Assembly: GCA_019828565.1 (NCBI GenBank) | Contig: JAHDYR010000003.1 | Location: forward strand, 186,001 to 250,000 | Direction: 5' to 3' | From: Carpediemonas membranifera BICM | Lineage: Eukaryota > Protista > Fornicata | DNA length: 64,000 nucleotides | In this document: piece after piece, positions 18,167 through 59,703 of the stretch | Numbering within the stretch: position 1 is the stretch's first letter | How the letters are laid out: each line of letters begins with the position of its first letter | The notes under the pieces: generated by a model | Told to the model about the DNA's origin: nothing | Databases searched by the model: none | What the model saw: only the letters and a program-made list of their open reading frames with translations | Position numbers and translations under genes: made by a program

Positions 18167-18219
18167 GTTGAGTTGGCGAGTTGTTGTGTTCTGGATGGTT
18201 AAACTGCGCCCGACCTGAA

Positions 18220-18315
18220 TGTGGTATTTACATGACTATGTAGACGCAGTTAGAGCCATTATCACCGCGTAGGAGGTATACCCCTTAAACACTTCACACT
18301 TGTTTCCAGACTTCA
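18220..18315 (+). repeat. 5' LTR of element A (96 bp)
   Basis: TGTGGTATTT...CCAGACTTCA, identical to 26473-26568. Confidence 0.97.
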
Positions 18316-18337
18316 GTAATTACTACGGTTTGACGCA

Positions 18338-19096
18338 ATGGGAGAAGACGTAACGATAGGTCCACCGATGAAGGACCTCACGATCGAAGAGTATATGCGA
18401 GTACGAGACATCTACGACGAGTACAGCCTGGAGGCAGACGACGGCAAGCACCGTAAGCCTTTTCACTCCCTGGTCAAGCCTGCGTTGAAGAGACAGGTTT
18501 TACGCGAGACAGGGAAGTCCAGGATCGACGAGTTCGTGGAGCCGACATGTGCGACGAACGGTAACGGATCGGTGTCGACTCAGCAATACATGAAGCATCA
18601 AGACGACGTCAAGAAGGCACGACGCGCACACCAGAAGAAGGAGGACGCATTTTGGAAGAAGAGCATAGAAGAGCTCGTCCTACCCACTGAAGTGTTCGCA
18701 CGGACGCAGCTTTTGACGAATGGACCTGAGAAGAGCGTAAGCGAAGTGCTCAACAGGATTTCAGCGAGAGCGGCGGTGTTGTTCCAGAAGATAGAGGACA
18801 TCCCGATAGATGCAACGAAGAGGCTGATCTTGGAGGCGTGCAAGCACGAAGGACAACACGCAATACTCCAGGGCGTCGTTGACGCATGCACTGACTCAGC
18901 CGGAGTCATGCAATCAGTAATGCTGTGGGAGAGGAAGAAGCGCGAGGCAATGAAGCAGTTTGGGCTGTTGGAGCCCCCACATCGTCTACATCGAAGAAAG
19001 ACGTGCAGAAGCAAGAGCAGGGGCAGAAGAAGTTGCACTGCTATAACTGCGGGGGTGGGGGCCACATGGCCAAGGACTGCCCAGAGCCGAAGATAG
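18338..19096 (+). CDS. gag: Element A Gag (frame switches near the C-run at 18974-18978 into the zinc-knuckle/Pol frame)
   Basis: First ORF, starting 22 nt after the 5' LTR. The CCHC knuckles lie in the overlapping next frame. Confidence 0.75.
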
Positions 19097-21507
19097 CCGG
19101 AGGCACCCGTCGCTGTTATCGGTGTGGTAAGGTGGGGCACGTCGCGAAGGACTGTCCGGACGCCAGTAAACCCGATCAGTGTTTAGTCTTTGCCTCGGGG
19201 GTGGAAAGCAAGGTTTGGGAGTGCAGCATGAGTGTCGGGCTGAAGGAGCATGTGGTGCGGCTCGATACTTGTGCTAGCAGCAATTTCATCCCGCCGGAGT
19301 TGGCCAGAGAGTGGGGCATCCGGACGAAGTGGGCCGACCGGTGGGTCAAGCTGGGCGACAACTCGACGGCGAGAGTGCTGACGGGAGGATCGAAGAAGGT
19401 CAGACTCGCATTGAAGAAAGACGTCGACGTCACGCTCCACTGGGACGTGATCGCTGGCTGCAAACCCACAATCTGCTTCAGGACCCTTGCCGAGCTGGGC
19501 CTGATCAACGTGGAGGCCACCACGACCGACGTCGACGGCGATGAGGAGTTGCTGGCCACGATGGACGAGCAGATCCGCGAGGAGTATGCCGATTGCTTCG
19601 GCCCGGCCGACGGCGCGGCAGACCTGAAGCCGTACAAGATCAGTCTGAGTGATGATGCGGTGCCCTACTTCGAATTGCCGAGGAGGCGGCAGCCGGAGAT
19701 TGAGCAGGCACTGTCGGGGCACCTCAAGAAACTGGAAGAGGCGAAGATCATCCGTAGGTCGAAGTCGCCCTGGTCGTCGCGCGTGGTCATGGCGAAGAAG
19801 AAGGGTGGGGAGTGGCGCCCGTGCATCAACTATATCCGCTTGAACAAGTTCATCGAGGATCCCCAGCACGACCTCCCGGCCATCGACGACATCATGACGA
19901 TGCTGGAGGGCAAGGTCAAGTTCGCAGCCCTGGACGCGAGCAGCGCGTTCCACCAGGTGCCGGTCGAGGAGGGGACGCAGGAGCTGTTGGCGTTCACCAC
20001 ACCCGACGGCCACTTCACCTATAACACGATGCCGTTCGGGTTGTCGACGGCGGCGGGCCATATGCAGGCAGCGCTGGAGGAGGCGTTCGCGGACATGTTG
20101 GGGACGGCCTGCCTCATCTACGTTGACGACATCCTGGTGTTCGGGGAGACGGTGGAGGAGTACGAGGCCAACCTCCGGCATGTCATGGACCGGGTGAGGG
20201 AGCGGAAGATCAAGCTTAACGAGAAGAAGTGCGCTTTCAACCTTGACGAGGTAGAGTACTTGGGCTGGACTGTGTCGAAGGAGGGACGGTCCGTGCCTGA
20301 GTGGAGGGTGGAGGGTGTACAGAAGCTCGCCCCGGCGCACAACGTCAGCGACGTCAGGGCCCTCCTGGGTATCTTCAACTTCTTCGCGAAGTTCATCCCG
20401 GGGTACGCGGACCTGGCCGAGCCGATCAGGAGGATGGAGCTCAAGGACGCGCCGCCGTGGGGGCCGGACCAGGACAGGGCGCTCGAGGCATTGAAGAAGG
20501 CGGTCACGAGCGCGCCGGTGCTGACACACCCGGACCCGGCGAAGAGACTCGCGCTGTACACGGACGCGTCGGACAAGGGGGTCGGCGCGGTGCTGATGCA
20601 GGAGGACGAGGGCGGCAAGCGGCCGATTATGTTCTTGTCGAAGGCACTGTCCGGCTCGCAGCGCAGGTGGAGCACGTATAGGAAGGAGGCATTCGCCATT
20701 GTCCACGCGATCCGCAAGGCTCGGCGTCTGCTGGCAACGCAGGAGTTCAAGGTGTGGTGTGACCACAGGAACCTCGCGTACGTGTGGGGCGCCAATGACG
20801 ACATGGTGCAGCGGTGGGCACTCGAGCTCGCCAACTACAAATTCGACGTGGAGCACGTGCCGGGCAGCCTTAACGAGATCGCCGACGGGCTATCGAGGGC
20901 GGCGCTCGCAGAGGAGCAGGCGAAGCAGGAGCAGGAGGACATTCCGGACCAGAGTCGGACGGAGTCAGACGAGGATGGCCCAGCGGCAGCCGGCGCTGAG
21001 ACAGAAGAGAGCAAGCCGAGACCGCAGGGGCAACTGCTGTTCAGAGTAGACGAGTTCAGGACGACACAGGAGGCGAGCCCGACACTGCCGGAGAGTCAGA
21101 AGGAAGCGAGGTTCAAGGAGGTACACGGCGCTGGGAAGGGCCACCATGGGGTGCAACAGACCCTGTGGAAGCTTGAGGACATCGGACTGTCTTGGGACGG
21201 AGCCGAAGCTGACGTGTCAACGATGGTCAAACGATGCCCCGTGTGCCAGAAGTCGGGTATGGGGGGCGACCCGTACCAGTCGAGCGCCGCGCGAGCCGCT
21301 GGGACCGTATGGTCGAGTGTTCGTGGACACCATCGTCATGAAAGAGGCCGACGGCGAGTACCGGAACATCCTGACAGTTGTGGAAGAAACGTCGCGATGG
21401 GTCACCCTGGTCCCGCTGAAGACAGTGTCGTCACGAGAAACCATCGAGGCATTGCAGAGGTTCTACCTCACCCACTTCCCGATGCCGGTCGAGTGGGTAG
21501 CAGATAA
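18925..21507 (+). CDS. pol: Element A zinc knuckles, protease, reverse transcriptase, RNase H and integrase N-terminus
   Basis: [75 protein letters not shown] and H..GHHG..CPVC. Confidence 0.95.
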
Positions 21508-22297
21508 CGGGTCGCAGTTCGCATCGACCGAGTTTCACGCGTGGGCCAGGGAGACCGGGGCGCGGGTCAACCACACGACGCCGTACTACCACGAGGAGAA
21601 CGGCGTGGTCGAGCGGTGGAACAAAGAGGTCAACCGCCACCTGCGGTGCGAGATGTATGAACGGCAGACCAGGAGATGGAAGGGTCTGCTCCCGTCGATC
21701 CAGAACATCATCAACTCGGCGCGTTCGAGGGCGACCGGGTCGTCGGCGTGGAGACTGGTAGTGGCGGATGGAACCAGAGTGACCGTGGACAAGCTCAAGG
21801 AACAGAGGATGGAGGAGGTGGAGGCTGCGCGCAGGATGATCCAGAACGAAGAAAATAGAAGAAGGAATATGGAGCAGACAGCGGCGAAGAAGAAGCAGGA
21901 CAGCCAGAAGCGAGCGGCTGACATTCAGCGGCAGCACCCTGAGTCGCGCGTGGCAGCGGGTTACTGGGTCTTCGTGGATCGCGACGCGGAGATTCGCAAG
22001 AAGTACGACCTCAAGTGGCGCGGACCGTTGATGGTGGTCAGGAAGGTCCCCGGGAAGGCGAACTCGTACGTTGTGCGAGACCCAGAGACGAAGAAGACGT
22101 ATCAGAAGCACGTTTCTCACCTGAAAGTCGCCGAGGGAGAGTGGAGCGAAGAGAAGGCCAAAGTAGCATGCGCCTTAGATAGAAGCCAGGCGTATATCAA
22201 GAAGATAGTGGACTGGAGGATTAGAAGAGACGCCAACAGGACACCGGAAGTGAGGTGCAGGTGGCTGGGATTCGAAGCCAGCGAAGACACCTTGTGA
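21146..22297 (+). CDS. Element A integrase core and chromodomain, interrupted by element B and resuming at 26320-26444
   Basis: [33 protein letters not shown] and [14 protein letters not shown]. Removing element B and one ACCT restores EDTWRVATDED...QSRK*. Confidence 0.9.
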
Positions 22298-22374
22298 TCT
22301 TGTCGAGGTTAAAGGTTTCAAAACAAACTGTTTATAGGGTTCGCACGTGTAGTTGGTACCCTAAACTGCTCACA
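22293..22374 (-). repeat. 3' LTR of element B (82 bp)
   Basis: Identical to 26234-26315. Confidence 0.97.
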
Positions 22375-22382
22375 CTTCCCCT

Positions 22383-25300
22383 CTAAAGGTGCAGCTCCGG
22401 GTGAGCCTCGGCATAAATGTCGAGGGCTTCGAGGTCGCGGACCTCGTGGTACGGGAGCCACTCATCGGCGCCTGGGTAGCCATCCCAGGCGACGAGGAAT
22501 TCGAGGGTAGACTTCGTGGGGCCACCACGGTGGCGGGTGATGGCCTCGACTTCGTAGGTGTCGTCGTCAAGGGAGGCGACGGTGATGTCATCGAAGGCCA
22601 GGGAGTCGTCGTACTCCACGAGCCGGGAACCGTGATACTGGAAGGTGGCGCCGGCAGTGGGGTTGTGTACGGTGTAGATGTCGTGCTCGCGGTCAGTGAT
22701 CGTGTATGGGCCAACGAGCTTAGTAGACAGCTTGGTGGGGCGCTTCGAAGGGCGCGTGACAAGCACCTTCGAGCCAATAGGAAGGGGCTCGTCGCCGAAA
22801 GCCGGACGTTTCGAGAGGACGTTCTCTTGGTGCTGGCGTGCTGTCTCAATGAGCTTGGGCTGGGCCTGGAGAACACGGCTAAAGAAGCGGCCGTATTCAC
22901 TCTTCTCCTCCCTCAACGTGGGCGTCGGACGACAGGAAGGGGGTGACGTTCTGTGAAGCGAACATGAGCTGTGCGGGGGCAATGCCCGTGGTGGCACATA
23001 TCGTGGTGTTCATGATCCGCTGGACGACTGGGAGGTAAAGGGACCAGTTGTTAACGTCGCGCAGCTCCTGAGTGATGGTACGTAGGTGTCGTGAGAGCTC
23101 GGCGTTAGCTCTTTCGACGAGCCCGTTGGCTCTGGGGTGGTATGGAAGAGAGACAACGTGTTGGGCGCCGAAGAGCTTAATGAGCTGTTGGAAAGCGGTG
23201 GCAAGGTACTGAGAACCGCGATCACTTCGGAAAGAAGACGGAGTACCGTAGCGTCCCGTGACGGAGATAAGAGCGCGAAGGGCCTCTGCAGAAGAAGCAT
23301 CCTTGCATGGGACCAGCTCTACGAAGCGTGTGAAGGTGTCAATGAAGGTGATAACGTAGCGGCATCCGTTGGAGTCTGCAGGATAAGGCCCGACCGTATC
23401 AAACGCCCAGCAGGAGCGTGGGGTGACGCCCATGGTAGGGCGGAGGCCTGTCTGAAGGCGCTTGGGAAGTCTGGCGTTCTTCTGACATATCGGGCAAGCC
23501 TTGATATACTCGGCGACAGCGTTGCTCATTCCACGGAAGTCAAGGTTTCGTTCCTTAAGGAGGCGGAGTGTAGCCTCTCGGCCGAGGTGTCCCTCGACGG
23601 CATTGTGGACAGAGGCTATGATAAGTCGCTGGAGTGTAGGGGCATTCTCGGGGGTTGGACGATGAAGCACCTGGATATGCCATCAGTGAGGGTGTTGGAG
23701 ACGCCAGAGATGTGTTCAACGACAAAGTCGAACTCTTGGAGTCTGAGGTTCCAGCGGACGACCTTGGGTGTGGTAGAACGGCGCATATAAACTAGGTTAC
23801 GGTGGTCTGTCTGTATAGCGAACGAGTGGCCGAGGAGATAGGGGAGTACTTCTCGACAACCGCGAAGAAGATGCCGAAGGCTTCCTTTTCGATGACAGCC
23901 CAGTTGCGCTCTGCGGTGGTGAATGCGTGGCTACAGTAGGAGACTACGTGTTCAACGCCATCCTTGACGTTGAGGAGCACGCCTCCACAGCCAATGTCGC
24001 TAGCATCGGTGCGAACGATAATTGGGGCAGAGTAGTCCAGGAAGGCTAAACACGGCGTGTGGGCGGCGAGGTTCTTGCTCTCTTCGAAAGCAGTCTGGGC
24101 CTCCTTTGTCCATTTCCACCGGACCTTCCCAGAGGTGAGGGCGTATAGTGGCTGTAGGATCGAGCTGAGGTTGGGGATGAACCTACGGAAATAATTCATC
24201 GCTCCACAGAAGGCCCGCGTGGTCTTGATGTCCTTAGGAGGAGCCATGGCCTGAACGGCCTTGACCCGGGCGGGGGACATGCGGATTCCCTCGGGGGAGA
24301 TGATATGGCCGAGGTATTCCACCTGCTCAGCGTACAGACAGCACTTGCTGGGATGAAGGACGAAGCGATGTTCCTTGAGAACGGCAAGGATCTCAGCTAG
24401 GCGTGTAGCTAGTTCGTCCGTGGTTGATGCGTGAATGATGATGTCGTCTATGAAGACCTCGCACGTAGTTCCGACAAACTTGGAGAGCAATTGGGTCATG
24501 ATGGCCTGGAAGGTAGCAGGAGCCGTTTTGACGCCAAATGGAACGCGCGTATACTCATAAAGGCCGGTTGGAGTTGAAAACGCGGTTATCGGAATGGAAC
24601 TTTCGGACAGTGGGATCTGGTGGTATCCACTAACGAGATCTAACGTCGCAAAGCAACGTTGGCCTGCGAGATGCGACATCAGCTCTTCTTGGTGTGCAAG
24701 TGGGAAACTGACTTGCTTGATGCGATCATTCGCCTGACGGTAGTCCACGACGAGGCGGCGGGCACCGCCCTTTTTGGGGACAGTAAAGACGGGTGCAGCC
24801 CAGGGAGAGCGTGAGGGGCGGACGATTCCTTGAGCAAGGAGCTCGTTCACCTGGTCATCAACCTCCTGCTGGATTGCAGGGGATAGACGACGCGGCGGTT
24901 GAGCAGCCGGTGTGGCGCCCTCAAGCAGCTCTATCTCCATAGGGGGAACGTCTGCTCCGTCTGGGTGGGGACGGCTGGTGAAGACTTCGGCATACTCATC
25001 ATAGACGGCTCTGATGGCTGGCGGGAGGGCAGACGCGGTTGAACCTACGTCAGGGAGCTGCTCTCCTTCATCTAGGCGAGTGACGGGTGCGTGATCCTCA
25101 TCGATCGTCTCCCTCATCGGCCGTTGGGGCCAAGGAGAGGGAGAGATCTTGGATAGTGGAGTTTGAGAGGATCAGATCCTCCGACATAGAGGGGAGGATG
25201 TAGAATGGCCGAATGGAGCGAACGCCATCAATGAGCATGGCAAGGAACACAGCTCTCTTGATGAAAACTGGACCGTTCGCGGTATCCAAACGAACGTTAG

Positions 25301-26218
25301 CGACGGCTGGAAGAGCGCCACGTTGGATAAATGATTCGGCTATCGTGGGGAGATGAGGTCAATAGTTGCACCAGTATCAAGTACTGCACAGACCTCTGTG
25401 GCAGTACTCTCGTTGATGGGAACATAGAGAGTGGCTTGGCGACAGATGAGGCCGTCGTGATCAGTGGCGGCCAGATTCGCCTTTTCGCGCTTGACTGGCG
25501 GACCCTGGATGGGAGTCTTGCGCACGCCAGAGCGGAAGAAATCTCTGTGTCCTTGATAGGGACAGTTGGGGCGGATGTGGCCCGTATGGCCACAGCCGTG
25601 GCAGGGGGCAGACGATCGTTGGGGTAGTCTAGCCCCAGCGGCGGCGCCGGGAGTCGGGCGCTTACCAGCTGGCTGGGCCGGTTCCGGCTGCAGGAGCGAC
25701 TGGAGGTTAAGGAGTTCCTCCAGTTCATCAATGGCGTGGTCCTGCGCCTCTGCGACGTCATCTGGCTGCTCCATGCGGATACGCTCCGCAAGAGGATCTG
25801 GAAGTGCCTGCAGGTATGCCTTCACCATTAGCTTCTCTGGTGGTGTGACGTCGGCTGTGAACGAGCTCCGGATAGTTTCGAAGCGTTCGATATGGTTGAG
25901 AAGCTGTGCAGGCGTTGATAAGGGGCCCGTTCGGGCGCACCGCAGCGACTTCAGCTTGGCTAGTGCTTGAACGTTACTGCGGGGGCTATAGAATGTTTGG
26001 TAGACTGTGTCCAAGACAGTATCCGCCGGAAGATCGGCCGGATTGTCGTTGAGACGGCGTGTGATGAGAAGAAGAGGCGTAGGATCCATCAGGGCAGTCG
26101 GATGGAGAAGAGGATCGTCAAGGCGTTGAGCTCGGTACGCACGGTAGGACGATCGGAACTTGGTGAACGCCTGTTCTTCTAGTGTTAGTAAGAAAGGTCT
26201 TGGTATGTAGTCGGACAT
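22383..26218 (-). CDS. Element B gag-pol, split into several frames at G/C homopolymer runs
   Basis: CHGCGHTGHIRPNC knuckle, LDTGAT protease, PFGVKTAP and FIDDIII (RT), RTDASDIGCG (RH), HNAVEGH..CPIC, SDRGSQY and ANGLVER (IN), VGPY, and chromodomain YEVEAITRHR..FLVAWDGY..EWLP. Confidence 0.9.
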
Positions 26219-26233
26219 TAGATGAGTGTACAC

Positions 26234-26315
26234 TGTGATCTTGTCGAGGTTAAAGGTTTCAAAACAAACTGTTTATAGGGTTCGCACGTGTAGTTGGTAC
26301 CCTAAACTGCTCACA
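26234..26315 (-). repeat. 5' LTR of element B (82 bp)
   Basis: Identical to 22293-22374. Confidence 0.97.
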
Positions 26316-26472
26316 ACCTGGAGAGTGGCAACAGACGAAGACATGCGGTCCAACATCGTGTTATTGAAGTACATGGAGGACCATAGCCAACTTGCAAAGT
26401 GCGTTGACGAGCATTTGCGCAAAGTCGGTCAGAGTCGGAAATAGAAGCATGGCTCTGATGGAGGAGGGGTAG

Positions 26473-26568
26473 TGTGGTATTTACATGACTATGTAGACGC
26501 AGTTAGAGCCATTATCACCGCGTAGGAGGTATACCCCTTAAACACTTCACACTTGTTTCCAGACTTCA
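26473..26568 (+). repeat. 3' LTR of element A (96 bp)
   Basis: Identical to 18220-18315, preceded by the PPT and followed by TSD CTGAA. Confidence 0.97.
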
Positions 26569-26578
26569 CTGAAGGACC

Positions 26579-26828
26579 TGTAAGGTACCTTACCTAACCT
26601 TACCTGCCCCTCCCCGGGCAGCCCCCACCAGGCTGGTTGTCTTCTACGGAAGCGCTAGATTCAAGACGCCCCGTCGGGTGCATCCATGCGCGCCGTATGG
26701 TCGCTTTGCTACCTTACTACCACACATCATGAGAGCTTTCAACATCACTGCTGTAAGCTAGTCTTCGCTTCCGGGCAAGCTAATTGAAGTGGAGAGACGA
26801 CTTGCACTGTGCACTCTATGATACTTCA
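26579..26828 (+). mobile_element. Non-coding deleted derivative of the Fanzor locus (candidate stand-alone omega-RNA)
   Basis: 26605-26753 matches 59135-59283, and 26757-26828 matches 59612-59683 with 2 mismatches. It is flanked by the direct repeat CTGAAGGACC (26569-26578 and 26829-26838). Confidence 0.9.
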
Positions 26829-27076
26829 CTGAAGGACCCACCACCGTGCCACTATGCTCCACCTGGTCGAGAATATCACGCCCAACCCCGCATGCGGTTA
26901 TTCTGTAGAGTGTCTTGTGTCATCGTGATGCTTTTCTTGATGCTACAGCTCTGAAGGGGAATTCCGACAACAAGACGTTGGCATGTTTCGGCAGCGCCGG
27001 GGAGGACGGAGCCCATATGTATGTGTTTCCATATGTATACGATAAATGGCAGCGCGAGTCCGGCGGGTGAAAGGCA

Positions 27077-28055: not shown

Positions 28056-31000
28056 CTAGAACAACTCCATCCTCCTCAGAGACGCGCTGACCCTCGCCTC
28101 CAAGCTACTCTTGGACCCCTGCCCTCCCCTGTCTCTCCCCACGGCCGCCGTCTGCTCCACCACGCCGAAAACACCGCCCCCAGCATCGGGGGTGGGTGCC
28201 GACTGCGGCTTTCTGACGGGCGAGGCAGACGCTGGGCTCTTACTCGGTGGCCTGGGCGATGAGTACCGGTTGAGCAAGGCCGCCCGCTCAATAACGAGAG
28301 TGGAGATCTGCTGCTGCAAATCTTGGATCAGATCCGCCTCCTGTGCACCCCTGGAGTCCATCTGCTCCCTCAGTGCGGTAACCTGGGCCCTGAGCGTCGC
28401 TATGGTGCCCTGCGTGGTCTCACCCTGCTCGATGAGGTCAGCCAGCTCCCGGTCCTTGGCCTCAAGGTCTGATCGGAGCTTGGCATTGTCACACTGGTCT
28501 GTCTCTAGCTGTTCGGCAGAGCTCTGGGCCCGGGCCAGCAATGACAGCTCCAGATCACGTAGCCTGGTCTTCTCTGACTCGAGTGACTCCAAATCTGACT
28601 CGAGGCGAGTCTTAGCTTCTTCCAGCTCGGCGGCGGTCTTCCCACTCTGGGCGATGCTCTCCTCGACCCTGCTCTCCCGGTCAGCAACGAGTTTCTCATG
28701 CTCGGCCACGCGGGCCTGTCTCGCCTCGAGCTCGGCCCTGTCGGCGATGAGCTCAGCCTTCTGCTCGGCAAGCTTCTCCTGCTTATGGACGACATCGTTC
28801 ATCTCAGTTTTGATTGACTCAAAATCTGAGCTGAGGGCGTTATGGATCTCGTTGATCACCGATTCTCTCGCGGCAACCTGCTCTTCAAAGAGCTTGAGAG
28901 CCCCTTCCCTGTCTTCCACAGCCTTGGCGCCGTTAGTGTAGAGGGTTTCAAGCTGATCGACGGCGTTCTCGAGCTGCAGGAGCTTGAGTTCCACCGCCTT
29001 CTTCAGCCCTTCGATCTCCGCCACGCCGGCGTCAATTGCGCTCGGTGCAGCCTTCAGCGGCGACCCGTTGCCCAACTCGTCTCTCGAATTCCTGTGCTGC
29101 CGAGACAGCTCCATCTTCAATCTCAGTAGACTTGAGTCCCGTTCTGCGATTGCATCCCTCAGGTCTCTTGGGGAGGCTGAGGGCAGGGGGGACTCGAGCA
29201 CCTTAAAGGCGGACTTGGACAAGGGAGGCAAGGTCGGTAAGAAGTCGTCAGAGTCAGTCGAGTCAAATGTGCCGGAATATGACTCATCCGACTCCGAGAC
29301 TGACTTGACTCTGGGGGTAGAGTGCCGGACTCGGGCGGGGTCACTGCTGATGAGGCGGGCCGACTGGGATGATGACCTCTCCCTCACCCCATGGTCGCTG
29401 TGCTCTGGCCTGGGCGTCACTGTGTGGGTCGTGCGGAGGAAATCGATCATCCGCTGGGCGGTGGAAAGCTTGGCCGCCGTCTTGGCGACTGAGGCCTGGA
29501 GGGAGTCGATATCCTCTCGGGCGGATGTGAGGTCTGCTTGAGCTTGAGCGAGGTCGGCGCGGGTAGTTCTGATCGTCTCGTCCTTCTCGTTCAGCTCCGC
29601 GACACATTTGTCGTTAAAGTGCGACATCGCTTCGAGACGGTCTCGCGCGGCATCGACGTCTGCGTTGCTCTGTTGCGCCTCGCTCAGCGCTGACCGAAGG
29701 GAGTCGACCTCGTCGTGCGCAGCCTCTAAGTCGCCCATCGCGTCTGCGTTGCTCTGCTGCGCCTCGCTCAGCGCTGACCGAAGGGAGTCGACCTCGTCTT
29801 GCGCGGCCTCTAAGTCTGCGCGCGTCGCCCTGATCGTCTCGTCCTTCTCGTTCAGCTCCGCGACACATTTGTCGTTAAAGTGCGACATCGCTTCGAGACG
29901 GTCTCGCGCGGCATCGACGTCTGCGTTGCTCTGTTGCGCCTCGCTCAGCGCTGACCGAAGGGAGTCGACCTCGTCGTGCGCAGCCTCTAAGTCGCCCATC
30001 GCGTCTGCGTTGCTCTGCTGCGCCTCGCTCAGCGCTGACCGAAGGGAGTCGACCTCGTCGTGCGCAGCCTCTAAGTCGCCCATCGCGTCTGCGTTGCTCT
30101 GCTGCGCCTCGCTCAGCGCTGACCGAAGGGAGTCGACCTCGTCTTGCGCGGCCTCTAAGTCTGCGCGCGTCGCCCCTGATCGTCTCGTCCTTCTCGTTCA
30201 GCTCCGCGACACATTTGTCGTTAAAGTGCGACATCGCTTCGAGACGGTCTCGCGCGGCATCGACGTCTGCGTTGCTCTGTTGCGCCTCGCTCAGCGCTGA
30301 CCGAAGGGAGTCGACCTCGTCGTGCGCAGCCTCTAAGTCGCCCATCGCGTCTGCGTTGCTCTGCTGCGCCTCGCTCAGCGCTGACCGAAGGGAGTCGACC
30401 TCGTCTTGCGCGGCCTCTAAGTCTGCGCGCGTCGCCCTGATCGTCTCGTCCTTCTCGTTCAGCTCCGCGACACATTTGTCGTTAAAGTGCGACATCGCTT
30501 CGAGACGGTCTCGCGCGGCATCGACGTCTGCGTTGCTCTGTTGCGCCTCGCTCAGCGCTGACCGAAGGGAGTCGACCTCGTCGTGCGCAGCCTCTAAGTC
30601 GCCCATCGCGTCTGCGTTGCTCTGCTGCGCCTCGCTCAGCGCTGACCGAAGGGAGTCGACCTCGTCTTGCGCGGCCTCTAAGTCTGCGCGCGTCGCCCTG
30701 ATCGTCTCGTCCTTCTCGTTCAGCTCCGCGACACATTTGTCGTTAAAGTGCGACATCGCTTCGAGACGGTCTCGCGCGGCATCGACGTCTGCGTTGCTCT
30801 GTTGCGCCTCGCTCAGCGCTGACCGAAGGGAGTCGACCTCGTCGTGCGCAGCCTCTAAGTCGCCCATCGCGTCTGCGTTGCTCTGCTGCGCCTCGCTCAG
30901 CGCTGACCGAAGGGAGTCGACCTCGTCGTGCGCAGCCTCTAAGTCGCCCATCGCGTCTGCGTTGCTCTGCTGCGCCTCGCTCAGCGCTGACCGAAGGGAG

Positions 31001-32178
31001 TCGACCTCGTCTTGCGCGGCCTCTAAGTCTGCGCGCGTCGCCCTGATCGTCTCGTCCTTCTCGTTCAGCTCCGCGACACATTTGTCGTTAAAGTGCGACA
31101 TCGCTTCGAGACGGTCTCGCGCGGCATCGACGTCTGCGTTGCTCTGTTGCGCCTCGCTCAGCGCTGACCGAAGGGAGTCGACCTCGTCGTGCGCAGCCTC
31201 TAAGTCGCCCATCGCGTCTGCGTTGCTCTGCTGCGCCTCGCTCAGCGCTGACCGAAGGGAGTCGACCTCGTCTTGCGCGGCCTCTAAGTCTGCGCGCGTC
31301 GCCCTGATCGTCTCGTCCTTCTCGTTCAGCTCCGCGACACATTTGTCGTTAAAGTGCGACATCGCTTCGAGACGGTCTCGCGCGGCATCGACGTCTGCGT
31401 TGCTCTGTTGCGCCTCGCTCAGCGCTGACCGAAGGGAGTCGACCTCGTCGTGCGCAGCCTCTAAGTCGCCCATCGCGTCTGCGTTGCTCTGCTGCGCCTC
31501 GCTCAGCGCTGACCGAAGGGAGTCGACCTCGTCTTGCGCGGCCTCTAAGTCTGCGCGCGTCGCCCTGATCGTCTCGTCCTTCTCGTTCAGCTCCGCGACA
31601 CATTTGTCGTTAAAGTGCGACATCGCTTCGAGACGGTCTCGCGCGGCATCGACGTCTGCGTTGCTCTGTTGCGCCTCGCTCAGCGCTGACCGAAGGGAGT
31701 CGACCTCGTCGTGTGCAGCCTCTAAGTCGCCCATCGCGTCTGCGTTGCTCTGTTGCGCCTCGCTCAGCGCTGACCGAAGGGAGTCGACCTCGTCTTGCGC
31801 GGCCTCTAAGTCGGCTCGCATGTCCTGCGAAGTTTGTTCCTGGACCCAGGCATCCTTCTTGTACCTCCTGATCGTCTCTTGGGCGTCGTCCATGTCCGAC
31901 CGAAGCGTACTGATCTCCTCTCGGGCGTTCATAAGAATGTTATACATCTCCTGTGACGGTACAGCTGCATTAGAGGGCTCTCGCCGGTTTTCCTCTTCTA
32001 AATTCTGCTCTAGCTGCTGTACTTTGACCTTCAAGCCTTCAAACTCAGGATCTATACGACAAACATACCATTCATAGGCCTGGAGCTGAAGCTGCAGCGA
32101 TTCAACGATCTCATTCCAATTTGCTGGAGCTATTGATCGCTGACGACTGTCATAGTATAGCGTTCGACGCGAATTCAT
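28056..32178 (-). CDS. Large coiled-coil tandem-repeat protein (one gene, apparent 1-bp frameshift near 30174)
   Basis: Two overlapping ORFs share the same repeat peptide. One unit reads CGCCCCTGAT where all others read CGCCCTGAT. Confidence 0.85.
29560..31812. repeat. Coding tandem repeat of 261-bp and 345-bp units built from an 84-bp (28-aa) subunit
   Basis: Near-identical DLEAA(H/Q)DEVDSLRSALSEAQQSNAD repeats. Spacings of 261 and 345 nt are visible in the ORF track. Confidence 0.95.
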
Positions 32179-57873: not shown

Positions 57874-57955
57874 TCTGCGGCGCTCTCGAGTTTCTGTGCA
57901 TAAACTGCACAAAACGTAGAAGGGGTCTCGATACAACAAGAGTCCTACTTTACTG

Positions 57956-59683
57956 CTTGCACTGTGCACTCTATGATACTTCATTACCCCTTCCCGCTCT
58001 CCCTTCCTTCTTCTTGAGAGTGATATTTCGATAGTGTGTCATCATCGTCGGGGGTCATCAATCAGTGCTTCTCCAGTCCTCTCGCCATGCAACTAGCTTC
58101 CCACCTATCGTCTACCCCATCTTACTTCCATCCGCTCTCTTCTGCTTGTCGGATTTCGGGGTCTTGATCATGACGTCTTTGCAATCATCACCATGGCCTT
58201 CCATCGCACAGCGGGCTCTTCTATGCCGCTGCCTGAAGATAAAACAGTTCAGTTCTTCTAATTCTCGCCATTATCACTGCATAGTCTCGTTCATTAAACG
58301 TCTGTCGTCTTTGATGTGTGTTGTTAACAAGTGATCGGTTCATTCACCGCAAAACGCTCTGGGAGAGCTCACGGATATGGTTGCGGCATTCAACACCGCC
58401 CATCCACCTCTTCCGGGTGACAAGCCGCTGGCTGGCCCCAAGCTTGTTCCGCTTGTCCCGATGGCTCCGGTCCGCCCCGGGTTCATGTACGTTCCCTGTT
58501 CTCTCAACGTGCTGAGCCCGGCTTGGCTTGCCCAACTTGGGGTCGACCCAGAGCATCACGCCACTGAGCGCATGACGCGAGAGCAGCTAGAGGCTCTTCC
58601 TCCGAACATCCGTCGGGTGCTGTCTGTCAAGACAGATGGGGTCGCCGTGGACCTCACGGTCCAAGTTGGTGCTCTGCCATACGTCAACAGACGTGCCAGT
58701 GGCAACCCGACGATGAAGCGAAAGGCTCGGGAGCGTCTGGGTGTGGATGACGCAGATGCTCGCCCCGCGCCAGACCCCGATGCCCAGGTCATGGGTTTCG
58801 ACCCGGGTGCTCGGGCTCTGGGTGGATTCTTCATCCGCCACCCAGATGGCACCACCAGCTCCGGTGTGGTCCCGAAGTGTGGGTACACCAAGACCCCCAG
58901 CTTCGCGTTCGATATGACTCCTGCTTCATTCAAAAGTACAAATCTAGATAGTCTACAAAACTCGATTAGGTTTGTGCTCCTCCACGAGCAGGAAATATTC
59001 GACGCTGGGATGGTCAAGAGCTTCCGCAGAGTGCGCCTGACGAACCACATCTTGCGTCAAAAGCACTTCCACAGAGCTGGGGAGCAGCTTGCTCGCACCC
59101 TAGGATGGACTCCTCGGCGACTCCCTCGCGGTATTGCCCCTCCCCGGGCAGCCCCCACCAGGCTGGTTGTCTTCTACGGAAGCGCTAGATTCAAGACGCC
59201 CCGTCGGGTGCATCCATGCGCGCCGTATGGTCGCTTTGCTACCTTACTACCACACATCATGAGAGCTTTCAACATCACTGCTGAAGTGCGGATGACTGAC
59301 GAGTTCCGAACCTCACTCGTCTGCCCCCTCTGCCGCGCGAGGTTCCGTAGAACTCGCTACACGAGGCGCACGATGCGATGCCACAACCCGAATTGTCAAG
59401 GTGCTCCATGGTACAGACAGCAACGCCTCAATTCCAATCCTACATCCACTTGGCTCAATCTCTCCCACAGAGACAAGACTGCTGCACAGAACATCTTGGA
59501 TTGCGGCCTCATGACGGATGCACAGTATCAAGCCAGTGCTTTCAGAAATCCAAGACCTCCAGCCCGTCTTCCCAACTATAACCCCAATACACCAATTACG
59601 GCTAACCAGCCGCTAGTCTTCGCCTCCGGGCAAGCTAATTGAAGTGGAGAGACGACTTGCACTGTGCACTCTATGGTACTTCA
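57956..59683. mobile_element. Fanzor-carrying element bounded by a 28-bp direct repeat with LTR-like features
   Basis: CTTGCACTGTGCACTCTATG(A/G)TACTTCA at 57956-57983 and 59656-59683. A minus-strand purine tract at 57984-58013 abuts the left copy. No TSD was found. Confidence 0.65.
58377..59642 (+). CDS. Fanzor (eukaryotic TnpB-family RNA-guided RuvC nuclease), possibly N-terminally truncated
   Basis: SVKTDGVAV, RuvC-I MGFDPG, VVFYGSARF, RuvC-II TDEFRTSLVCPLC, zinc finger completed by CHNPNC, and RuvC-III HRDKTAAQNI. The D-E-D triad is intact. Confidence 0.9.
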   Translation: MVAAFNTAHPPLPGDKPLAGPKLVPLVPMAPVRPGFMYVPCSLNVLSPAWLAQLGVDPEHHATERMTREQLEALPPNIRRVLSVKTDGVAVDLTVQVGALPYVNRRASGNPTMKRKARERLGVDDADARPAPDPDAQVMGFDPGARALGGFFIRHPDGTTSSGVVPKCGYTKTPSFAFDMTPASFKSTNLDSLQNSIRFVLLHEQEIFDAGMVKSFRRVRLTNHILRQKHFHRAGEQLARTLGWTPRRLPRGIAPPRAAPTRLVVFYGSARFKTPRRVHPCAPYGRFATLLPHIMRAFNITAEVRMTDEFRTSLVCPLCRARFRRTRYTRRTMRCHNPNCQGAPWYRQQRLNSNPTSTWLNLSHRDKTAAQNILDCGLMTDAQYQASAFRNPRPPARLPNYNPNTPITANQPLVFASGQAN

Positions 59684-59703
59684 ATAGAAGGCGATATTCC
59701 AGG
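59612..59703 (+). ncRNA. Candidate Fanzor omega-RNA (scaffold to 59683, guide from 59684)
   Basis: A 72-nt block conserved in the 26.8-kb copy, with similarity ending sharply at ACTTCA. It has two potential stems: TAGTCTTCGCC..GGGCAAGCTA and TGAAGT..ACTTCA. Confidence 0.6.

Follow-up and report, generated by a model that had tools for sequence, protein, structure and literature searches.

Features of the locus

We examined a 64,000-nucleotide stretch of the Carpediemonas membranifera BICM genome (assembly GCA_019828565.1, contig JAHDYR010000003.1, positions 186,001 to 250,000; hereafter the window), in which an open reading frame (ORF) at 58377-59642 on the forward strand ends in a TGA at 59640-59642. 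This stop codon opens a 44-bp unit at 59640-59683, which has TGAAGT..ACTTCA ends. The last 28 bp of the unit recur upstream of the ORF at 57956-57983 (27 of 28 identical), within a 30-bp core repeat (57954-57983) that is shared by both ends. On the minus strand, the left copy follows a purine tract (57984-58020) that directly abuts it, with the 57984-57997 junction reading as purines next to TGAAGTAT. The same window holds an autonomous Ty3/gypsy element (gypsy A) at 18220-26568 on the forward strand, with 96-bp LTRs that end in ACTTCA, a CTGAA duplication and a PPT/LTR junction at 26461-26480 that is parallel to the one described above, being alike at 12 of 14 positions. Pfam finds zf-CCHC (gag knuckle), RVT_1, RNase H, Integrase_H2C2 and rve domains in gypsy A, which is interrupted by a second, nested gypsy (gypsy B) at 22293-26315 with 82-bp LTRs. 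The sequence features given in a preliminary description of this locus are therefore all present, and its observation holds, although two corrections are needed with respect to the left boundary, which had been set at 57956, and to the target duplication, of which none had been found.

Comparison with other copies in the genome allowed us to correct the limits of the element. The 1.85-kb stretch has more than 70 matches in the 24.2-Mb genome at 95-98% identity, and copies were aligned with their flanks. The right end always stops at the position of 59683, whereas the left end lies 35 bp outside the previously described repeat, at 57921 in the window, with boundaries drawn from about 25 copies and solo ends. 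The element thus spans 57921-59683. With these limits, a 5-bp target duplication is found at 57916-57920 (GTAGA) and 59684-59688 (ATAGA), matching at 4 of 5 positions in this copy, and perfect 5-bp duplications flank at least 16 other copies and solo ends. The left end (57921-57983) is a 3′ LTR-like unit read on the minus strand, which is 63 bp long here (variant b) and has its first three bases mutated in this copy. The right end (59640-59683, minus strand) is a truncated 5′ LTR-like unit consisting of the core plus an 18-nt part unlike the left end; it is 48 bp in most copies, and the window copy has lost 4 bp. A 29-bp end core occurs 119 times in the genome, against 0 for the reversed control, and we rejected chance on the basis of this copy number. 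Many of these occurrences are solo ends of 62-70 bp with their own 5-bp duplications, which are perfect in L049, L055, L059 and L066 (L and C numbers are our labels for individual copies and for contigs, respectively).

Full-length copies are about 2.45 kb and contain no second gene. The window copy lacks 715 bp, with the deletion junction at 58356/58357 at the end of the remaining leader (58021-58356), which removed the ATG and about 235 codons. The same deletion occurs in L002 with different flanks.

Target site and relationship to gypsy A

In 23 of 25 independent left junctions, TGC lies exactly at positions -15 to -13. It is part of a motif close to TAAACTGCRM, which is followed by five variable bases and then by the 5-bp duplication, placing the insertion exactly 10 bp from the motif. 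Both this family and gypsy A insert exactly 10 bp from the same motif (AAACTGCRM), mostly in the same orientation. The 9-mer TAAACTGCR occurs 2413 times in the genome against 269 for its reversed control, a 9-fold enrichment. Its reverse complement lies 15-42 nt upstream of an ATG that opens a long ORF on the other strand, both at most insertion sites and at 16 of 41 exact motif sites in the DNA examined, where about 9% is expected from random positions. In the window, the motif (AAACTGCAC, 57902-57910, forward strand) has its reverse complement about 30 nt upstream of the IFT57 start codon on the minus strand, and the left duplication lies at motif + 5 nt, as in other copies. The element fills what would otherwise be an intergenic gap of about 70 bp between the divergent IFT57 and IFT121/WDR35 genes. 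The motif is therefore most likely a core promoter element, with the mobile element landing just upstream of it.

Gypsy A copies also have 5-bp duplications. In 6 of about 9 gypsy A insertions the same motif is found at the same spacing (at 18201-18209 for the window copy), and in 5 of those 6 the U5 (ACTTCA) end faces the motif. The Fanzor-bearing element always has its left end facing the motif. Read on the minus strand, this end finishes with the same 9 nt as the U5 end of gypsy A in variant a, matches at 17 of 20 nt in variant b, and in the solo end of L049 has its outer 22 nt identical to the U5 end of the C33 variant of gypsy A; in the window copy, the outer 23 nt are homologous to U5. 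Whole-LTR alignment to gypsy A is weak (z 1-2.4) and not significant in either orientation (z 0.4-2.4), such that only the anchored termini and the PPT junction are convincing. On contig C68, gypsy A inserted at the very site already used by a Fanzor element and duplicated the same five bases again. Together with the PPT-like junction, these features fix the LTR sense as the minus strand. The Fanzor gene is therefore antisense, as had been proposed, and a gypsy-A-type integrase is the most likely inserting enzyme, although this last step is inferred from shared signatures only.

The encoded protein

The ORF at 58377-59642 encodes 421 aa from an internal Met and is N-terminally truncated. It retains GFDPG, DEFRTS..CPLC..CHNPNC and HRDK..QNI, that is, split RuvC motifs (D, E, D) with a zinc ribbon between the second and third, and these are conserved across paralogues. 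Direct searches are weak: Pfam Cas12f1-like_TNB scores only E 0.086-0.18, below the cut-off, and PDB sequence searches give E 0.15-0.7. A word-based homologue search found relatives only in Carpediemonas, and an AlphaFold model built from a 16-row alignment was too poor to use (pLDDT 43). A profile of 16 Carpediemonas paralogues, however, found four remote proteins among 1.84 billion representatives at E 2e-4 to 9e-4, each carrying the Cas12f1-like TNB domain above Pfam's cut-off. Profile-profile comparison (hhalign) of the paralogue profile against that of these four proteins gives 99.1% probability and E 1.7e-18 over 182 columns. The profile of the four proteins in turn hits the solved Fanzor1 proteins SpuFz1 of Spizellomyces (8gkh, E 1.7e-26), PpFz1 of Parasitella and GtFz1 of Guillardia, at E 1.7e-26 to 2e-13. 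The motif pattern is also that of Fanzor1, with a Glu in DEFRTS before the CxxC..CxxxxC ribbon and RD..A..NI. We therefore file the family as Fanzor1-like, on the basis of profile comparison.

In this subfamily, every scored copy that spans the whole gene has a stop or frameshift, and no intact gene was found among the scored copies. Variable sites are spread evenly over the three codon positions, both for singletons (34/33/29) and for shared variants (16/11/13), so that no purifying selection is visible. Deleted copies without a working gene have nevertheless moved, including the 715-bp deletion form found at two sites with different flanks and 622-bp mini-elements with duplications. Here the gene behaves as a passenger that is not needed in cis, and the window copy itself is dead. 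Sister families at about 44% identity include open frames of about 640 codons, for example the open 643-codon copy at C18:237663-239564.

Mode of replication

There are several possible explanations for how this element is copied. First, a canonical non-autonomous LTR retrotransposon (LARD/TRIM-like), replicating through normal R-U5/U3-R strand transfers with helper gag-pol, would account for the TG..CA ends, 5-bp duplications, PPT-like tract, solo ends and the ends shared with an autonomous partner. We consider this very unlikely, as the two ends are consistently unequal. In the LTR sense, the 5′ unit (right end, 48 bp) and the 3′ unit (left end, 63-65 bp) share the first 30 bp and the last 6 bp, and the rest differs in the same way in more than 20 copies, whereas any canonical cycle would make the ends equal, whichever strand is the template. 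The 5′ unit also lacks the U5-like part and any recognizable PBS: no site complementary to a tRNA 3′ end and no TGG-type site follows the right unit, only a 5-6-nt resemblance to the post-LTR sequence of gypsy A is seen, and no tRNA gene was found in the window. Additionally, 12 copies are truncated on the left but keep a precise right end, on the 5′ LTR side. In L017, L024 and L057, and in the fragment at window positions 26605-26828, that end sits at the canonical distance from the motif with a target duplication of 9-12 bp, followed in three of the four by filler. This is what a one-ended strand transfer finished by host repair would produce, and it argues for a linear DNA intermediate that often lacks the left end. 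It is also the end that canonical synthesis would complete last, for which we have no explanation.

Second, a DNA-only element, in which a gypsy-type or Ginger-like DDE enzyme cuts or copies chromosomal copies and pastes them without an RNA intermediate, would explain the faithful inheritance of unequal ends, the 6-bp inverted termini, the many internal-deletion derivatives (as in MITE families) and the one-ended events. This is possible but unlikely. No transposase ORF is present in the element, only 6 bp are inverted while the repeats are direct, the conserved internal PPT-like junction has no role in DNA transposition, and Ty3/gypsy integrases are not known to excise chromosomal DNA. The outer part of the left end, which comes in three variants, also appears to recombine with gypsy U5 sequences. 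These variants do not follow the tree of the right 790 bp, where, for example, a clade with support 98/92 joins a variant-b copy with two variant-a copies, which points to exchange of this part as template switching or recombination with gypsy-like U5 sequences would give. The chimeric U5 parts and this tree incongruence are the only, indirect, hints of an RNA intermediate. A TIR DNA transposon is likewise not indicated, a Helitron was rejected because of the duplications and TG..CA ends, and an IS200/IS605- or IS607-type TnpB carrier, expected to have no target duplication and hairpin ends or a serine recombinase, does not fit the 5-bp duplications and the single gene of the 2.45-kb unit.

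The reading that we favor, with fair but not complete confidence, is that the locus is a decayed copy of a non-autonomous, LTR-derived mobile element whose only cargo is a Fanzor1-like nuclease gene lying antisense to the LTR sense. The analysis establishes that new copies carry an integrase-type signature, namely TG..CA ends, 5-bp duplications and insertion exactly 10 bp from a host promoter-like motif. That a Ty3/gypsy integrase supplied in trans, most likely by the gypsy A lineage, makes the insertions is an inference, as is the non-canonical route by which the DNA intermediate would be made; an RNA intermediate, omega-RNA production and guided cleavage have no direct evidence. In this view the two ends are not regenerated as equal LTRs, and the U5-like outer part of the left end seems to be exchanged with gypsy-A-like sequences. 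A pair of variant-a ends lies 5.45 kb apart at C13:711515 and C13:716966. For this candidate partner at C13:711515-716991, a protein search for gypsy RT listed no hit inside the interval among the 53 of 1746 candidates scored. The preliminary interpretation of a non-autonomous LTR retroelement carrying an antisense Fanzor is thus supported only in part, as the LTR-derived, integrase-inserted carrier is well supported whereas a normal LTR pair and the guide-RNA coupling are not.

Proposed guide-RNA coupling

It had been proposed that an omega-RNA ends at the right LTR-like end and takes its guide from the flank, so that each integrase-made insertion reprograms the nuclease. In its favor, the right end directly follows the stop codon, as in characterized Fanzor1 loci, and every deletion derivative keeps the last 380 nt, with mini-elements carrying a promoter-like GTGCAGTTTA motif some 30 nt upstream of it. 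Contigs from four small sequencing runs of one sample pile up over the last 250-400 nt (59264-59683) and over the leader, far above the ORF body. These contigs show presence rather than strand, ends or level, and their RNA nature is only surmised, from a 24-fold difference in depth between IFT57 and IFT121 in one run (X1). The contig pile-up and the promoter-like motif are weak points in its favor, and both, like retention of the last 380 nt and the conserved end, fit cis needs of mobilization equally well. Against the proposal, folding of 59430-59703 on both strands was no better than shuffles (z -0.46 and +0.43), Rfam gave no match, and the five bases that would adjoin a flank-derived target in the empty site are variable, leaving no adjacent TAM. 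Together with the absence of an intact gene among the scored copies and of visible selection, nothing that we computed supports this coupling, and we regard it as improbable. A related hypothesis, equally doubtful but not excluded, is that in intact members of this or sister families the Fanzor makes an RNA that runs through the LTR-derived right end into the flank, giving the nuclease a new guide against the empty allele upon each insertion. This would be a retroelement-derived carrier with an RNA-guided homing or drive function, which a current review considers without evolutionary rationale.

Comparison with known systems

Fanzor and TnpB nucleases are thought to pay their way by restoring or spreading transposons that excise. 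Bao and Jurka 2013 list only DNA-transposon carriers, a 2026 review states that no retrotransposon is known to encode a Fanzor, and we found no paper on this family in Carpediemonas. A whole Fanzor family inside LTR-derived ends with integrase insertion marks widens the known range of carriers, and raises the questions of what the nuclease does for an element that need not excise and how an element with unequal mini-LTRs can be copied. Separately, nucleotide-precise insertion 10 bp from a 9-nt motif points to a core promoter-like element of Carpediemonas and to a tethered integrase, comparable to Ty3, in a deep-branching eukaryote.

Among Fanzor1 elements, SpuFz1 of Spizellomyces punctatus (Saito et al. 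2023, PMC10432273) likewise encodes a TnpB-like RuvC nuclease with a zinc ribbon and the same motif pattern (GxDPG, then E in xDEFxTS before CxxC, then RD..A..NI), and is multi-copy with many decayed and short ‘ghost’-like derivatives. SpuFz1, however, lies between 30-nt inverted repeats of a DNA-type element, whereas here the ends are direct, LTR-derived units with 5-bp duplications and a PPT-like tract, and no omega-RNA is shown. Saito et al. also saw Ty3 inserted near SpuFz1 and judged it incidental. Jiang et al. 2023 (bioRxiv 10.1101/2023.06.13.544871) reported Gypsy in the neighborhood of many Fanzor/HERMES genes; that was a within-10-kb statistic, while here the gene lies inside LTR-derived ends bounded by duplications.

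Non-autonomous LTR elements (LARD, TRIM) similarly lack gag-pol, have ends and a PPT resembling those of an autonomous partner, leave solo ends and are mobilized in trans, as is inferred here. The present ends are unequal and very short (48 and 63-65 bp), no PBS was found, and the element carries an antisense nuclease gene. Ginger DNA transposons, whose transposase is reported to derive from gypsy integrase (Bao, Kapitonov and Jurka 2010), share TG-type termini, short duplications and integrase-like chemistry. Ginger elements have long inverted repeats and encode their own transposase, neither of which is present here. Finally, Ty3 integrates at Pol III start sites and Tf1 at Pol II promoters, and here too insertion is placed to the nucleotide beside a core promoter-like element of host genes in a compact genome, with the difference that the landmark is a 9-nt motif 15-42 nt upstream of protein-gene start codons.

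Additional fragments and derivatives of the Fanzor element

A second fragment of the Fanzor element is found at 26569-26838 of the window, directly after the right LTR of gypsy A. This fragment is truncated on the left and has a 328-bp internal deletion, and it is flanked by a 10-bp duplication (CTGAAGGACC) that starts with gypsy A's own 5-bp duplication, plus about 28 nt of filler. The same junction is carried by contigs from the sequencing runs.

A subfamily of mini-elements was also observed, represented by the 622-bp element at locus L063 (contig C13 of the genome) and additionally by the genomic loci L053, L057, L065 and L048. These consist of the left 144 nt, an unrelated insert of about 108 nt holding GTGCAGTTTATATA, and then the last 380 nt. 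Another locus, L062, has the same left part and insert, followed by what looks like a host gene, and may mark the origin of the insert. At locus L055 (3030-4035), a truncated, internally deleted copy of a sister Fanzor family (P0009-like) sits right after a solo end of this family, and is flanked by a 16-bp duplication rather than a 5-bp one.

Associated LTR and possible LTR sequences, and a separate array of repeated units

At two unrelated loci (the right flanks of L003 and L019), another LTR, which starts TGTGGTATTTAGAGGG, begins 2 nt after the right end of a Fanzor element, suggesting a further gypsy family that lands beside these ends. On contig C13 of the genome (G000:C13:711515-716991), two variant-a outer-end sequences lie on the same strand 5.45 kb apart, without the core beside them. 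One possible explanation is that these are the LTR ends of an autonomous partner. Similar lone ends lie about 450-700 bp upstream of sister-family Fanzor ORFs at C34:69367 and C54:1386744 (contigs C34 and C54), in the opposite orientation to that seen in this family.

Within the window, a long array of 261-bp and 84-bp units, up to 100% alike, is present at 29396-31952 and overlaps ORFs of 675-767 aa on the minus strand.

A candidate core promoter motif

The motif present at 57902-57910 and 18201-18209 of the window was also examined genome-wide, where TAAACTGCR is 9-fold enriched (2413 against 269 occurrences) and its reverse complement lies 15-42 nt upstream of start codons. It is a candidate core promoter or initiator motif of Carpediemonas, of which we did not find a description. 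The nested gypsy B, on the minus strand at 22293-26315, has 82-bp LTRs and a 4-bp duplication (ACCT). Read in its own sense, its LTR begins with a near copy of the promoter-like motif (GAGCAGTTTA), which implies a U3 of only about a dozen bases.
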